A DNA stretch of 7,902 nucleotides from Fonticula alba ATCC 38817 (lineage: Eukaryota; Protista; Nucleariida), in NCBI GenBank assembly GCA_000388065.2, contig KB932214.1; one strand, given 5' to 3'. The position numbers were made by a program, and so were the translations under genes. Of the stretch, positions 1 to 7,902 are shown piece by piece. The notes beneath the pieces were generated by a model, which worked only from the letters and a program-made list of their open reading frames with translations, had not been told where the DNA came from and searched no databases. The first letter of the stretch is position 1, and each line of letters opens with the position of its first letter.

Positions 1-268
1 GAACCCGAGGAACTGGAGGCGGCGAGGAAGGGGGGGGGGGGAGGAGGACGCAAGAATTCAAGGGCCAGCAAAGTTAGAGGGGCCCACACACCCGGATGCG
101 CATCCGCACGCTGATAACCAAAGGGGGGGGGGGAAGATGGAGGAGGAGGAGGAAGCGATGACAGGGAGGGACCGAGCGAGAAGCGGAAGAAACAAAGAGG
201 CGACAGGGGGGGGAGGCGCAGAGGGGCCGGGAAAAGCGGGCAGACGAGTGGCAAGCCCAGTCGCGCAC
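1..268 (-). other. Intron beginning at donor 268; 3' end uncertain
   Basis: gtgcgc donor followed by pyrimidine-rich, non-coding-like sequence with C runs. A candidate CTAAC (77-73) and AG (14-13) lie near the window edge. Confidence 0.7.
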
Positions 269-792
269 CTGCACCAGAATGGACATCAGGTAGCCGATGA
301 CATCGAGCCCGGCCGCACGCAGCGGCAAACTCGGGATGAAGGGTGGCCGGAAGCTGGTCGACGTGGACAGGGGCCAGAGCTCATCGGCCGGGTACACCCG
401 CCGGCCGCGGCGCCGGGGCCGGGCCACGACGCTGCTGCACGACCGGGCCACTGCCAGCTGGTCGGCCGAGGGGTCCGACGGCAGGGAGGCCGAGCCGGCC
501 CCGGCCCCGGCCGGCAGCCCGGCCACCGGCGTGCAGGGAGCACTGTCCATCGGGGTCCCGGCGTCAGTCGGGTCCAGCAGCAGGAGCCCGGCCTCGCGAA
601 CGTGGTCGTCCTCCTCCTCGGTGCCGGACTCCAGGGCCGCCAGGCCTTGGAGCATGGACGAGGGGCAGGACCCGCCGGCCAACTCGGCCGACAAGCAGCC
701 GGAGGCCCACCCGAGCCGCGGGGCAATCGGCACCGAGGGCACATTCAGCCCGTACATTTGCACCAGCCCATGCGCCAGGGAGCACGGTTGGC
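269..792 (-). CDS. TBC1D24: Exon 2 (524 nt): TBC domain N-terminal part with a long insertion
   Basis: Acceptor AG 794-793 is phase-compatible with exon 1. Encodes QPCSLAHGLVQMYGLNVPSVPIAPRLG...IPSLPLRAAGLDVIGYLMSILVQ, which resembles TBC1D24 [23 protein letters not shown] (recalled). Ends CAG|gtgcgc (donor 268, phase 0). Confidence 0.8.
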
Positions 793-915
793 CTGGCGCG
801 GGCAGGCACATGTGGGAGCAGGGGCGGGGGGGGGGGGGGCGGGGGAGAGGGAGTCAGCACAAGGGCGGCGAGGCTGGAAGGAAGCCGGGCGGCGGGGCCG
901 GGCAGCGGTGCGCAC
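793..915 (-). other. Spliceosomal intron (123 nt, phase 1)
   Basis: gtgcgc...ctgac (857-853)...C-rich tract...ccag. It contains an in-frame TGA; removal joins EEVD-G-QPCSLAHG in frame. Confidence 0.85.
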
Positions 916-2523
916 CGTCCACTTCCTCCGGCGCGCCGAGCAGCAGCGGCCAGACGACACCGCGCGAGGTCCACGGCACGCCGTGGGCCACCAGGGTGCG
1001 CAGGCGCGAGAAGCTGGACCGGCCGCGCACGGTGCGCGAGTGCGGGGCGAAGCGCTCGGCCGGCGACGCGGCCAGGATCTGGGCCACCTCCATGCGCGTG
1101 GAGTCGGACCAGATGGGCAGGCGATTGGACCCGCGCGAGGCGCCCGGCGTCCGGACCCCCAGGCGCCCGGCCGTGGTGGTGAGCGAGGAGGCGGCCGACG
1201 TCGGGGCCGAGCTGCTGCCGCCGGCCATCACCGACGAGGGGATGGCCATCGGGGGGGAGGAGGGCCCGCCGCCACGCCCGGCCGAGGCCCCGGCATTGGC
1301 GGCCGCCCAGGGGATGGGCGAGGAGGACCGGCTCGGGCCGGCCGAGTGGCTCTGCCGCCCGGGGCCGCCCCACGGGCCGCCGCCCGACCCCAAGGCCGAC
1401 GAGGACAACGACGGCGGCGGGGTCTGCTGCTGCTGCTGCTGGGAGTTCAGCAGGGCCCCCGGAACCAGGGCCGCGGCCGGGTGGTGGTACGGCGACCCGG
1501 GGACCAGGGCCGAGTGTTGCAGCGAGTCCAGCGACCCGATCAGCATGGCGGCCATCCACCGGCGGACGGCCTGCTCCTCGGCGCGCGAATGCTGCAGGGC
1601 CAGGCGCTCGGTCGGGGCCAGGCGCCGCATCAGCCGCCGGACCCCGGCATACGAGGGGAGGCTCTGCCGGTGGGCCACCAGGGCCGGATGCTCGGCCGGG
1701 CAGAAGGGGTCCACCTCGACCAGGAACCCGTGCGGGGGGAGGGCCGGCGGCTCGGCCGTGGCCAGCAGCCCGCCGGCCCCGAGGGCCGACAGCCCGGACA
1801 CCGGGCCGCCCTCGGGCGGCAGGCTGGCATCCTCGATGTCGGCCTCGTGGCCGTCATCCTGCCCGCCATGGCCGGATGCCGAGAAGTTGAACCCCGACAC
1901 CGGGGACAGCGGGTCGTCCAGCGCCCCGCCGGAGAAGCCCCCCCGCGCGGCGTCCAGCTCCCGGAACATGTCCTCGTTGTCGCGCTGGCGCAGCAGGCAC
2001 TGGTGCTCCGGGTCGTGCGCCGGCAGCAGCAGGCCCGGCTCGCCGGCCGGGGCGGTGGTGAAGAGGGCCACGTCCGGGTTGACCGGCGGCCCGGCCCCAC
2101 CAGGGGGGGGAGGAGCCTGCCCGGACACCGGGCCCGGGGCCACCGCCCCCGAGGGCGACGGCGGGGACGGCCCCCCCGGGCCCGGGCCCGGGCCCGGGCC
2201 GCCGGTGACCGTGGGATTGGCCGGCAGGGTGCCGGCCGTGAGGGCCGCCTGCTCGGCCTGCAGCACGGCCAGCCGGACGACCGCCGTGCAGGGCGAGCAG
2301 GACACCGACGCCAGCTGCACGCAACTCAGGCAGGCCATGAGCCCGGTGCCGAAGGGCGACACCGGCAATGTGGCCGACGCGGCGGTGCCATGGAAGCGAA
2401 GGCCCTCGGCCGGGGCGTCCGGGTCGCCGGCGGCCCCCGGGCTGGCCGCCCCCGACGCCCGGTTGAAGAAGGACGCGAAGAAGGACGGCGTCTTGCCAGG
2501 GCCGGCGGCGGGGCCGGTGGTGT

Positions 2524-2554
<31 letters not shown>

Positions 2555-3622
2555 GGCGGCGGCGGCCTCCCGCGCGTCGGCCGCCAGGATCTCGGCCACC
2601 TCGCGCTGCTGCGGCGAGGGGTGCCCGTTGGCGGCCACGGCCGTGGCCGCCGCATCGCCGCGGCCCTCCTCGCCCGGGGCCGGCGACAGGGACACATGCA
2701 TGGTGAAGCCGATGCATGGCGGCTGGCACTGGCTGGACACCAGCGTCGGGCCCGGGCAGGTGGCGCTCTGGGAGAGGCACTGGGCGCCGCCCGGCCCGAG
2801 CCCCAGGGCGTGGGCCGGCTGCTCGGCCGCGAAGAGCGGCGACAGGAGGCTGCCCGGCGGGGGGGGCGGCCCGGCCGAGGACCGGGCGTCGGTGGTGCCG
2901 GGCTGCCGGTCCAGTGACGCGGACCGCGGGTGCCCGGCGGGGCGCCGCGTATCGGCCCGCGCGGCGGCGGCCGGCAAGAGCTCGGCCGCGTGGAATGTCG
3001 AGCCGTACTCCGGCTCGAGCTCATGGTCGCGGGCGGCCGACGCCGACCGAGTCCGCGGACCGGGCCCAGGGTGTCCCGGCCCCGGCCGGTGGGGATCTGT
3101 GGGGGGATCAGCCGGCGGGGCGCCGGCCGTGGGAGTGGTGGCGGCCGTGGCGGCCGTGGCGGCGGTGGTGGTGGTGGTGGTGTCCTGCTCGTCGGCCGGG
3201 GTGATCAGCGCCTGGGCCGGTGGCCAGGTCTGCTTTTCCGGGTGCGGCCGCGGCTCCGGGTGGGCGGGGTGCTGCGGCTGCTGCTTGGGGGCCGACGGGT
3301 CGGCATCATGGGTCAGGGAATGCCGTCTGGCTGGGGGCGGCCCGCCGGGATCGCCCGGGTCGCCGGGCCCGGGCCCGGGCCCCGGGCCAGCCGCCGACGA
3401 TACAACCCCACGCCCCTGGAAAGGGGACCGGCGGGGGTTGAGCGCCGGCGCGGGGGCACCGGCACCCGGCGCCGGGGTCCGTGGACCTGCGCCGTGGTGC
3501 TGGTGGTGGTGCTGGTGGTGGTGGTGGTGGGAGTGGTGGTGGGGGGGGGCGTCTGAGCTGCGGGCATTTGCAGGGAGCGGTATTTTAGGGGGAGGGGGCT
3601 CGACCGAGGAGGTGACCGCCAT
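916..3622 (-). CDS. TBC1D24: Putative first coding exon of a TBC1D24-like TBC+TLDc protein: about 870-aa low-complexity N-terminal extension, then the start of the TBC domain
   Basis: Open frame from ATG 3622 (MAVTSSVEPPP) with strongly G/C-ending codons. It ends in LRTLVAHGVPWTSRGVVWPLLLG, the TBC N-terminal motif LxxLxxxG(I/V)PxxxRxxVWxxLLG. Donor GAC-G|gtgcgc at 915 (phase 1); without splicing the frame stops at TGA 856-854. The start codon is less certain than the 3' boundary, and the symbol means TBC1D24-like. Confidence 0.8.
3494..3541 (-). repeat. (CAC/CAG)n triplet tract encoding poly-His/Gln (HHHSHHHHHQHHHQHH)
   Basis: gtg/gtg/ctg repeats visible on the + strand, in frame within exon 1. 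Confidence 0.9.
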
Positions 3623-3772
3623 TCTGGCGCAGTCAGCCGGACGAGGAGACTGTGTGGGTGTGGGTGGGTATGTGGGTGTCAGGATGTCAATGACAAGTGA
3701 GGAGGATGCGCGCGCCAGGGACAGACCGGCGAAGCGAGGCAGCCACGCACCACAGGAGAGGGGGAAGGGGGG

Positions 3773-4752
3773 NNNNNNNNNNNNNNNNNNNNNNNNNNNN
3801 NNNNNNNNNNNNNNNNNNNNNNNNNNNNNNNNNNNNNNNNNNNNNNNNNNNNNNNNNNNNNNNNNNNNNNNNNNNNNNNNNNNNNNNNNNNNNNNNNNNN
3901 NNNNNNNNNNNNNNNNNNNNNNNNNNNNNNNNNNNNNNNNNNNNNNNNNNNNNNNNNNNNNNNNNNNNNNNNNNNNNNNNNNNNNNNNNNNNNNNNNNNN
4001 NNNNNNNNNNNNNNNNNNNNNNNNNNNNNNNNNNNNNNNNNNNNNNNNNNNNNNNNNNNNNNNNNNNNNNNNNNNNNNNNNNNNNNNNNNNNNNNNNNNN
4101 NNNNNNNNNNNNNNNNNNNNNNNNNNNNNNNNNNNNNNNNNNNNNNNNNNNNNNNNNNNNNNNNNNNNNNNNNNNNNNNNNNNNNNNNNNNNNNNNNNNN
4201 NNNNNNNNNNNNNNNNNNNNNNNNNNNNNNNNNNNNNNNNNNNNNNNNNNNNNNNNNNNNNNNNNNNNNNNNNNNNNNNNNNNNNNNNNNNNNNNNNNNN
4301 NNNNNNNNNNNNNNNNNNNNNNNNNNNNNNNNNNNNNNNNNNNNNNNNNNNNNNNNNNNNNNNNNNNNNNNNNNNNNNNNNNNNNNNNNNNNNNNNNNNN
4401 NNNNNNNNNNNNNNNNNNNNNNNNNNNNNNNNNNNNNNNNNNNNNNNNNNNNNNNNNNNNNNNNNNNNNNNNNNNNNNNNNNNNNNNNNNNNNNNNNNNN
4501 NNNNNNNNNNNNNNNNNNNNNNNNNNNNNNNNNNNNNNNNNNNNNNNNNNNNNNNNNNNNNNNNNNNNNNNNNNNNNNNNNNNNNNNNNNNNNNNNNNNN
4601 NNNNNNNNNNNNNNNNNNNNNNNNNNNNNNNNNNNNNNNNNNNNNNNNNNNNNNNNNNNNNNNNNNNNNNNNNNNNNNNNNNNNNNNNNNNNNNNNNNNN
4701 NNNNNNNNNNNNNNNNNNNNNNNNNNNNNNNNNNNNNNNNNNNNNNNNNNNN
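3773..4752. other. Assembly gap (980 N)
   Basis: N run flanked by G runs on both sides. Confidence 1.

Positions 4753-4807
<55 letters not shown>
4753..4807 (+). repeat. Poly-G homopolymer (55 nt; poly-C on the transcript strand)
   Basis: Direct reading; abuts the gap, so the true length is uncertain. Confidence 0.9.
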
Positions 4808-4810
<3 letters not shown>

Positions 4811-4943
4811 GGAGAAAGAGCCAGAGGAACAAAAGAAAGAGGGAACAGAGCGAAGGCACGGGTCAGACAGATAGGCAGGCGCGCGGGAGGGGAGTGTGCA
4901 AGAAGAGCGCGAAAAGCAAAACGGGGCCCCCTCCCCGGCGTAC
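4753..4943 (-). other. 5' part of an intron (phase 0 donor), truncated at a poly-C run
   Basis: GAT|gtacgc at 4943, CTGAC at 4866-4862, a pyrimidine tract, then 55 C running into the gap. Confidence 0.8.
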
Positions 4944-5483
4944 ATCTTGCACGTCGTGGCTCCGCTGGATGAGGGCCCGCTCGTAGATGCGCAGGATGCC
5001 GATGCCCAGGCGGAAGAAGGCCTTGTGCCCCTCGAGGAAGATCAGGTCCAGCATGCGGAGCCCGGCCCCCGGGCCGGGGTCGGCCACCATCGACCCGACA
5101 AAGGAGGCCGTGGCCTGGTCCACCGGGTTCGGGGAGAAGGAGGACCCGGCCGAGTCCAGGGACCCGAGCGAGCCATTGATGGAGTAGTTGCTGCTGCCGG
5201 CGACGCCGGAGCGGCCACGGCCGCTGCCGAAGCCGGATCCCGGCCCGGTGATGGGCGACCCGTCGCGCGATCCGGCCGTGCCCCCGGGCGCCGGGTCCAG
5301 GGTCAGGTCGCGCGCTGGGATGCCCGTGCCGCCGAGGCGCCCGAGGAAGCACGATGCAAAGAGGCTGCGCCAGTAGGCCAGCCACGGGCCCTTGCGGATG
5401 CGCCGCCGGCGGAAGTGCGCCGCCAGCAGCGGCACATGCTTCATGGCCAGGTCGTGGAAGACGTGCGCGAAGAGCCAGTGTTC
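4944..5483 (-). CDS. TBC1D24: Exon 4 (540 nt): TBC domain C-terminal half
   Basis: cacag|GAA acceptor (AG 5485-5484). Encodes EHWLFAHVFHDLAMKHVPLLAAHF...WRSLFASCFL...LRMLDLIFLEGHKAFFRLGIGILRIYERALIQRSHDVQD, matching the TBC motif (R)xxDxFxxEGxKxxFRxxLxIL. Phase 0 at both ends. Confidence 0.9.
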
Positions 5484-5697
5484 CTGTGGTGTCGACCGAG
5501 CCCGGGGGGGGGGGGGGGAGATGGGTGCAGGCGTGCCAGTGTGTGAGTGTGCGGGTGTGCGGGTGTGTCGACGCATTTGCGTGCAGATGTGTCGGCGCAT
5601 TTGCGTGCAGATGTGTCGGCGCATTTGCGTGCAGAGGCCTGCATGCACACCGCGCGCCCATGTCCGGACAGGCAAAAAAGAGCGAATAGAGACGCAC
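5484..5697 (-). other. Spliceosomal intron (214 nt, phase 0)
   Basis: CGT|gtgcgt...C run...cacag|GAA. Removal changes frame and yields FVPIGQR-EHWLFAHVFHDLAMKH, gap-free against TBC1D24 [23 protein letters not shown] (recalled). Confidence 0.85.
5564..5635 (+). repeat. Intronic minisatellite, 3 x 24 nt (tgtgtcgRcgcatttgcgtgcaga)
   Basis: Units 5564-5587, 5588-5611 and 5612-5635; one A/G difference; no spacers. Confidence 0.95.
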
Positions 5698-5856
5698 ACG
5701 CTGACCGATCGGGACGAAGGCCCAGCCGGCCATGGACAGACCGGTGTCCACGACGCTGAAAAGGCACGCCAACACGTCGTCAGCCGATGGCACGAACGTC
5801 AGCAGGGCCGTGGCCATCGGGTACAGGTAGGGACAGTAATCCGCATCGGGGCGGGC
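5698..5856 (-). CDS. TBC1D24: Exon 3 (159 nt): TBC domain core
   Basis: Long C tract, then gcgcag|GCC (AG 5858-5857). Encodes ARPDADYCPYLYPMATALLTFVPSADDVLACLFSVVDTGLSMAGWAFVPIGQR, similar to TBC1D24 [21 protein letters not shown] (recalled). Donor gtgcgt at 5697. Confidence 0.85.
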
Positions 5857-5913
5857 CTGCGCATGGCGTTGGGAGGGGCAGGGGGGGGGGGGGGGGGGAG
5901 GGGGGGGGGGGGG

Positions 5914-5970
<57 letters not shown>

Positions 5971-5998
5971 GGGGCGGGCGAGAGGCGGGAGGAGCGGC
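5857..5998 (-). other. 3' part of an intron with a near-pure poly-C tract (G-rich 5881-5969 on +)
   Basis: About 90 nt of almost uninterrupted C on the transcript strand, ending in CAG before exon 3. Confidence 0.75.
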
Positions 5999-6329
5999 NN
6001 NNNNNNNNNNNNNNNNNNNNNNNNNNNNNNNNNNNNNNNNNNNNNNNNNNNNNNNNNNNNNNNNNNNNNNNNNNNNNNNNNNNNNNNNNNNNNNNNNNNN
6101 NNNNNNNNNNNNNNNNNNNNNNNNNNNNNNNNNNNNNNNNNNNNNNNNNNNNNNNNNNNNNNNNNNNNNNNNNNNNNNNNNNNNNNNNNNNNNNNNNNNN
6201 NNNNNNNNNNNNNNNNNNNNNNNNNNNNNNNNNNNNNNNNNNNNNNNNNNNNNNNNNNNNNNNNNNNNNNNNNNNNNNNNNNNNNNNNNNNNNNNNNNNN
6301 NNNNNNNNNNNNNNNNNNNNNNNNNNNNN
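5999..6329. other. Assembly gap (331 N)
   Basis: N run. Confidence 1.
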
Positions 6330-6375
6330 CCCCCCCCCCCCCCCCCCGCACACTGCCAAGCACCCCGCCACGCAC
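6330..6375 (-). other. 5' part of an intron (phase 0 donor), truncated at a G run
   Basis: AAG|gtgcgt at 6375, then a short G-rich stretch into the gap. Confidence 0.75.
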
Positions 6376-7887
6376 CTTGTAGTCCTGGGCCCGGTGGTAC
6401 AGCGAGTCCAGCGAGTACCCATGCCGGCGAGTGGCGAACACACAGGCCAAATCCCGCGACTGCCGGTACGACCGCGGGAGCCACGACCACAGCAGCTGCA
6501 GGTCATCGGCATCCAGCAGGGTCGGCGCGTCGATCGGGTAGGAGGGCGTGCTGGAGGCCAGGTGCTGGCCCGGGGCCGCCAGCGGGGCCACCGTGGTCGG
6601 GGCCTGCCGGCCGCGGAAGGACACCAGCGGCACCGTCATCAGCTCCAGCCCCCGGGCATCCGGCGACAGGGCCGACAGGGCCGACGCCGCGGCCAGGGCC
6701 ACGGCCGAGGAGGTGGCCGGCCGGTCGCGCGACCGCTGCTGCCGGCCGCCGGACCGGCCGTGCATATTGCCGCCGGCATCGCCAAACAGCGACACCTGGC
6801 GCTGGCTGTTGGCCACGGCCTCCGGGTCCACCAGGATATGCGGCACCGGCCGGTGGAAGCCCATCGACGGCTCGACCCACACCACCGACGAGGAAGCCTG
6901 CGGGGTGGACGGCAGCGGGGAGCTGTACGCACTGGCCAGGGAGCTGCCCCGGACATTGCCCTGGATGGCTTGCGGATAGTCGATGTGGTTGATCTCCGAG
7001 TCGGAGGAGCTGCTGTCGCTGCTGTCGCTGTCCGACGAGGAGGAGGAAGAGGAGGACGACGAGGAGGAGGAGGAGGAGGACGACGACGACGAGGGGGACG
7101 AGGGCGACCCGCTCGGCATCAGGTAGGCCGGGGCCGGGGCCCGGGTGAAGTCCAAGTCCGGCACATTGGGGTTGAGCACGGCCCGGCCGCCGGCCGCGCG
7201 CCACGGCCCATCACACGGGGCGCCCGCCCCGGGGGGGCAGGCGCACGGCGAGCAGCCGCACCCGATGGTGATGGCCGGCGGGTCGGCGTCGGCCCGGTCG
7301 GACGCCCCGTCCCCGGCGCTGCCCAGCCCGAAGAAGGACAGCACCCGGTCGCGGATGCGCGTCAGCGCCGGGGACGAGGGGGGCGGCGTGGTCGACGGGG
7401 CGCCCGTGCCCCCGGAGGGGGACCCCCCGCGGCTGGCGTGGCCATTGCTGCCACCGGCGGCCAGCCCCTCGGGCGGGCTGTTGAGAGACCCGCGCCGGGA
7501 GCCGGCCGCGCTGCCGGCCGCGCTGCGGCTGCCGCCGCTGGCCAGGACCAAAAGCTCGCGCATGGCCGCCGGATTGCTGCTCGACAGCTGGGCCGCCTGC
7601 TCCCGGGCCAGGGCCACGGCCGCCTCGGCCAGCTGCTCATCCGCCTGGTAGGCCCCGCTGGAGGCCAGCCGGGCCAGGATCCGCTCCACCCGGGGGAGGT
7701 GCTTCATGCGCCGGGCGGCGATCTCCCGCCGGGGGAGCTCCACGCCGCCGGAGCGCGACAGGGTCGGCAGCCGCGCGGCCCCGGTGGACGAGTGGTGCGC
7801 CAGGGTACTGGAGCTGGCCCCGGCCATCAGGGCCCGGTCCAGGTCGAAGGTCGGCGCGCGGATCAGCATGTCCAAGGTGGAGATGAG
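6376..7887 (-). CDS. TBC1D24: Exon 5 (1512 nt): end of TBC domain, Ser/Gly/Ala-rich linker and first ~50 aa of a TLDc domain
   Basis: Poly-C acag|CTC acceptor (AG 7889-7888, phase 0). Starts LISTLDMLIRAPTFDLDRALMAG...LPRREIAARRMKH. Ends PTLLDADDLQLLWSWLPRSYRQSRDLACVFATRRHGYSLDSLYHRAQDYK (6525-6376), the TLDc start (TBC1D24: [31 protein letters not shown], recalled). The ORF-track 'M' at 7875 is a TTG, not a real start. Confidence 0.9.
7005..7097 (-). repeat. (TCC/TCG)n tract encoding a poly-Ser/Asp run in the TBC-TLDc linker
   Basis: gag/gac triplets on +; [37 protein letters not shown] in frame. Confidence 0.9.
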
Positions 7888-7902
7888 CTGTGGGGGGGGG
7901 GG
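7888..7902 (-). other. 3' end of an intron (poly-C + ACAG acceptor)
   Basis: cccccccccccacag immediately before the exon 5 frame. Confidence 0.8.

Follow-up and report, generated by a model that had tools for sequence, protein, structure and literature searches.

We analysed a stretch of 7,902 nucleotides from Fonticula alba ATCC 38817 (GenBank assembly GCA_000388065.2, contig KB932214.1; positions G000:C14:154964-162865), referred to below as the window. Five exons on its minus strand, spread over three contigs, encode parts of one protein in which a Rab-GAP TBC domain (PF00566) is followed, on its C-terminal side, by a TLDc domain (PF07534). Judged from sequence comparison, the gene is an ordinary, insert-rich new member of the known TBC-TLDc family, of the TBC1D24/Skywalker type. 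The contigs lie along the minus strand in the order C-B-A, whereas the protein runs A-B-C. We consider it very probable that this scrambled order is an artefact of the assembly and that the gene itself is not scrambled.

The gene and its contigs

The host of the gene is a relative of fungi, and according to a 2023 preprint GCA_000388065.2 is the sole assembly of Fonticula alba. This source assembly comprises 31.3 Mb in 214 scaffolds. Together with its two flanks (L017:1-10000 before the window and L018:1-10000 after it), the window covers C14:144964-172865. Local G+C is about 70-80%, and small contigs of 1.2-3.8 kb follow one another throughout the neighbourhood. The window itself consists of contigs A (3.8 kb), B (1.2 kb) and C (1.6 kb) separated by runs of N, and it is bordered by two further gaps of 2227 N before position 1 and 3961 N past position 7902 (Table 1). 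Beyond these gaps lie contig D, downstream of A, and contig E, upstream of C.

The splice signals of the five exons are uniform: the donors read GTGCGC, GTGCGT or GTACGC, and the acceptors end in CAG. Inside contig A, the best fit for the intron between A1 and A2 uses the donor G/GTGCGC at 915/914 and the acceptor CCAG/ at 794/793 (a slash marks the splice junction here and below), which gives an intron of 123 nt in phase 1; the other intra-contig intron measures 214 nt. The earlier note on this DNA had listed exons, splice sites and junction peptides, and we find all of them present. The peptides are MSILVQ/ARPDADYCP (269 joined to 5856) and SHDVQD/LISTLDMLI (4944 to 7887) when the contigs are read in protein order, and YK/ARPD (6376 to 5856) and VQD/SPRP (4944 to 3649) when they are read as assembled. 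Every inter-contig junction is in phase 0, and the sequence bears out the further statement that the assembled order stays in frame. The inter-contig introns would measure at least 410, 206 and 360 nt if the contigs are re-ordered, and 519, 1294 and 2809 nt as assembled.

The open frame of exon A1 spans 922 aa. An exact look-up of this frame and word-index protein searches over lengths of 277-2446 aa turned up neither an annotated nor an independently assembled copy of the locus. Near the N-terminus, within the coding exon (window 3490-3560, minus strand), there is a His-rich in-frame run (HHHSHHHHHQHHHQHH). In the linker between TBC and TLDc (window 7000-7110, minus strand), an in-frame run of about 30 Ser is followed by alternating Asp and Ser.

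Outside the window, contig D (minus strand) opens with the tail of an intron, closed by an acag/ acceptor, after which the reading frame runs from FGLLLIETTSGALFGAF... to ...SVEYYALI and a stop codon. Contig E appears to be non-coding and intergenic. The contig next to E carries a gene for an ABCD-type (peroxisomal) ABC transporter that is divergent from the TBC-TLDc gene. A non-coding contig E and a divergent ABCD gene fit a divergent promoter region beside the start of the TBC-TLDc gene.

Table 1. Contigs, gaps, exons and the neighbouring gene, with the matches of each exon to the reference homologue P0002 (residues, with BLASTP E values in brackets).
Feature	Position	Strand	Description	P0002 match
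Gap before A	L017:7774-10000	.	N run	
Contig A	1-3772	-	N gaps on both sides; single copy except for low-complexity matches	
Exon A1	916-3622	-	Likely ATG at 3622-3620 (start predicted from sequence); ~870-aa low-complexity N-terminal extension, then first TBC motif RLRTLVAHGVPWTSRGVVWPLLLGA	72-86 (0.047; tail of A1)
Exon A2	269-792	-	Rest of the first third of TBC, ending in LRAAGLDVIGYLMSILVQ; donor CAG/gtgcgc; acceptor predicted from sequence	99-111 and 127-145 (1.7 and 1.2)
Gap B/A	3773-4752	.	980 N; TBC end (position 215 of 216) on one side, 5' leader and start codon on the other	
Contig B	4753-5998	-	Begins with a long C-rich intron tail and finishes in at least 48 C; single copy	
Exon B1	5698-5856	-	53 codons, TBC core; acceptor gcag/, donor CGT/gtgcgt	153-199 (5e-6)
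Exon B2	4944-5483	-	180 codons, last part of TBC with a ~75-aa low-complexity insert; donor GAT/gtacgc	203-249 and 245-284 (1e-9 and 4e-7)
Gap C/B	5999-6329	.	331 N; flanking exons non-adjacent in the protein: TLD position 51 vs TBC ~position 89	
Contig C	6330-7902	-	N gaps on both sides; begins with 11 C then acag/ (intron end), finishes in poly-G; single copy in the assembly	
Exon C	6376-7887	-	504 codons: post-TBC region, long Ser/Ala-rich linker, TLDc start; donor AAG/gtgcgt at 6375	275-404 (3e-7)
Gap beyond C	L018:1-3961	.	N run	
Exon D	L017:7459-6444	-	Remaining TLDc and stop codon, followed by the 3' region; continues directly from exon C	409-463 and 512-540 (8e-5; TLD region)
ABCD-type (peroxisomal) ABC-transporter gene	starts L018:7291; C14:170156-172431	+	Divergent from the TBC-TLDc gene, in the contig next to E; PF06472 exons collinear	

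Exon order in the protein

All comparisons were run exon by exon, without joining the spliced protein. Searched with HMMER against the full library, exon B2 returned only four distant relatives, none from this genome; among them is P0002, a protein of 551 aa with PF00566 at 154-284 and PF07534 at 356-550, which serves as the reference homologue. In P0002, the PF00566 region is matched by exons B1 and B2, and the TLD region by exons C and D. The tail of A1 and exon A2 match P0002 ahead of the exons of contig B (Table 1). In addition, the end of A2 aligns to columns 120-145 of a profile built on the four relatives (hhalign E 0.036), and the motif in A1 aligns weakly to the N-terminus of the RabGAP1 TBC domain (4nc6 residues 23-47, E 0.87). 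Pfam gives no match in block A, even using short pieces.

Among solved structures, the best match of B1 is Skywalker (5hjn residues 189-221), and B2 matches the C-terminal part of the TBC domain (4p17 residues 247-277). In Pfam terms, B2 covers positions 185-215 of 216 in PF00566 and positions 115-146 in PF23436; it scores 16.7 and 19.5 bits at the profile end, below cut-off when the exon is taken alone. Residues 456-502 of exon C correspond to TLD positions 6-51 (17.6 bits) and exon D to TLD positions 56-81 (23.9 bits), where the cut-off for a single exon is 24.5 bits. The single-exon matches all stay under the curated cut-off, yet their order is consistent.

Because the TLD profile runs from 6 to 51 in C and from 56 to 81 in D, C must abut D; the assembly nevertheless puts B and A between them. 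Homology likewise contradicts continuity across the gaps as assembled, since the protein does not place the two exons that flank each gap next to one another. The join between B and C rests on domain order, because over its first 50-100 aa exon C shows no TBC-tail match by either BLASTP or hhalign. Block C had been described in the earlier note as the end of TBC plus the start of TLDc: the TLDc start stands, and for the TBC tail no similarity is detectable. By comparison of the exons, the protein order A-B-C and the minus-strand order C-B-A are confirmed, in agreement with what had been proposed, both by the map of exons onto P0002 and by the Pfam positions. The same placements agree that a product translated as assembled would split TLDc and put the start of TBC far past its end.

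Once re-ordered, the gene encodes TBC and then TLDc, as do TBC1D24 and Drosophila Skywalker; P0002, its nearest sequence relative, carries both PF00566 and PF07534, and the best structural match of B1 is to Skywalker itself. Unlike TBC1D24 and Skywalker, it has the low-complexity N-terminal extension (about 870 aa), and long inserts interrupt its TBC domain, the linker and TLDc. At the glutamine-finger position (YxQ), exon B1 reads Y-C-P, aligned with Y-S-P in Skywalker; for the arginine-finger position (IxxDxxR) we obtained no confident alignment. The likeness to animal TBC1D24 is one of domains and sequence matches.

Origin of the contig order

Only E-A-B-C-D on the minus strand gives a consistent layout; the assembly has E-C-B-A-D. 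All four breaks in the order fall in runs of N (3773-4752, 5999-6329, L018:1-3961 and L017:7774-10000), and exons that share a contig are collinear (A1 ahead of A2, B1 ahead of B2). When the contigs are re-ordered as E-A-B-C-D, with their sequence unchanged, residues 72-540 of P0002 are covered in order, the start of the gene adjoins the intergenic contig E and the stop codon lies in D. The successive P0002 matches then follow each other without a large gap and no exon is apparently missing; the N runs therefore need hide only intron sequence.

Two further results bear on the choice between an artefact and a scrambled gene. Contigs A, B and C are each present in a single copy in the 31.3-Mb assembly. 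Furthermore, all control loci from the same genome are collinear (16/16: 11/11 other multi-exon TBC loci, 2/2 TLDc loci and 3/3 ABCD loci), so the organism shows no habit of scrambling its genes. The preference for an artefact expressed in the earlier note is upheld by these results together with the position of the breaks. Scrambling was not confirmed at a TMEM120 locus (G000:C4:580843-585140, minus strand), where the profile can be detected just at positions 96-147 and 150-249, on two exons that are collinear; positions 1-95 and 250-324 were not found at C4:580843-585140. The two exons are separated by 3.8 kb, which include a run of about 785 N and a contig of 1 kb.

Runs of poly-C or poly-G (up to about 60 bases, with rare interruptions) are seen at window positions 4753-4800, 5880-5975, 6330-6345 and 7892-7902. 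Such homopolymer runs sit in introns just upstream of acceptors and at most contig ends, and they are probably the reason why the short-read assembly of this genome breaks up. We propose that one ordinary minus-strand TBC-TLDc gene would have been broken within its introns by short-read assembly, mostly at or near poly-C or poly-G. Between E and D, the scaffolder would then have set the three small contigs in the right orientation, with their order reversed and the gap estimates oversized.

A known error has this form. When a mate-pair library used for scaffolding is contaminated with paired-end reads, the order of contigs is swapped, their orientation is kept and the gaps are inflated (Sahlin, Chikhi and Arvestad, bioRxiv 10.1101/025650). 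Our locus resembles it in its swapped small contigs with orientation kept, its inflated gaps and its breaks at N runs. That error affects contigs shorter than the insert of the jumping library, and for the present assembly we infer the exact cause. The likeliest one would be wrong-sense read-pair links, arising when paired-end reads contaminate a mate-pair or jumping library, or else a sub-scaffold that was flipped contig by contig without reversal of its order. Either way, the repair would leave every contig on the minus strand and, between E and D, turn C-B-A into A-B-C without further change.

A different repair had been suggested in the earlier note, namely flipping each contig in place to obtain a normal plus-strand gene, and this fails. 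Exon D, with TLD positions 56-81 and the stop codon, lies on the minus strand downstream of A, and E is intergenic. With A-B-C on the plus strand, the last exon would lie on the opposite strand from them and at the wrong end.

Several points weigh against an assembly error. The true adjacency of the contigs is deduced and not directly observed from reads or transcripts. The homology of block A is weak (E 0.036 to 1.7), weaker than that of the other blocks, and its placement comes partly from elimination and from the only plausible start codon. The junctions of the assembled order are likewise in frame and compatible with splicing. The poly-C contig ends do not discriminate, because they suit the assembled neighbours (E with C, B with A) and the proposed ones alike. 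Finally, the gap sizes of 3961, 331, 980 and 2227 were not reproduced by any simple library model that we tried.

One alternative is that under-sized gaps conceal missing parts of tandem or partial copies, with C, B and A derived from different copies. Gap lengths are merely estimates and the region is very fragmented, as this explanation would have it. The possibility of hidden copies had been raised before, and copy number speaks against it, since A, B and C are found once each; moreover, TBC and TLD matches are paired at no other locus of this genome, the pieces join without overlap or missing segment, and a collapse of duplicates requires identical copies. We therefore regard different copies as a very improbable source of the three contigs.

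We give hardly any credence to a truly scrambled gene, in which the genomic order would really be C-B-A-D and an A-B-C-D message would arise through trans-splicing, re-ordering of exons during splicing or programmed DNA rearrangement. The inter-block junctions are all in phase 0 with good donors and acceptors, the orientation is uniform, and nothing in the window speaks directly against such a gene. However, each breakpoint is an unread gap, so that the assembled order is without support from contiguous sequence, and the multi-exon TBC, TLDc and ABCD control loci are collinear without exception. We know of no trans-splicing or re-ordering mechanism of such a kind in opisthokont nuclear genes; if true, a C-B-A-D order with a trans-spliced or re-ordered nuclear message would be unprecedented for an opisthokont. 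Scrambled genes of ciliates (micronuclear genes of Oxytricha and Stylonychia) and trans-spliced split genes also have non-collinear coding segments on one strand. Unlike the present case, theirs are read in contiguous DNA with pointer repeats or trans-splicing signals, whereas here all junctions are unread gaps and the other genes of the organism are collinear. Besides, the pattern is that of a textbook scaffolder error (bioRxiv 10.1101/025650).

That the assembled order is real and belongs to a dead, rearranged pseudogene or to a protein permuted in frame as C-B-A-D is extremely unlikely: the order does stay in frame across every junction, but the reading frame is open and the splice sites are intact in all exons, their motifs are conserved, the breakpoints coincide with gaps, and in a permuted protein the first third of TBC would follow the end of TBC past about 900 aa of low complexity, with about 1,300 aa separating TLDc profile positions 51 and 56.

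Consequences for annotation and the surrounding contigs

If the order is an assembly error, the locus matters mainly as a flag on assembly quality. Since all inter-contig junctions are in phase 0, a wrong order need not stop a gene predictor, which could output either several fragments or a TBC-TLDc protein that is permuted yet in frame. Any comparative study based on this sole assembly would inherit the false architecture. Accordingly, the re-ordered layout E-A-B-C-D should be adopted for the locus, and other such groups of small contigs in the assembly call for suspicion. Other genes in the contig chain of the two flanks may be misplaced too.

Further gaps in the neighbourhood lie at about L017 3751-4250, L017 5800-5990 and L018 6500-7250. 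At L017:4297-5553 on the plus strand there is an open frame of 418 aa, rich in Gln and His and lower in G+C, which is convergent with the 3' end of the TBC-TLDc gene. At L017:2750-3290, about 0.5 kb is occupied by an imperfect GA/CT-rich repeat, which reads as (REE/REK)n on one strand and as (LSS/LFS)n on the other.

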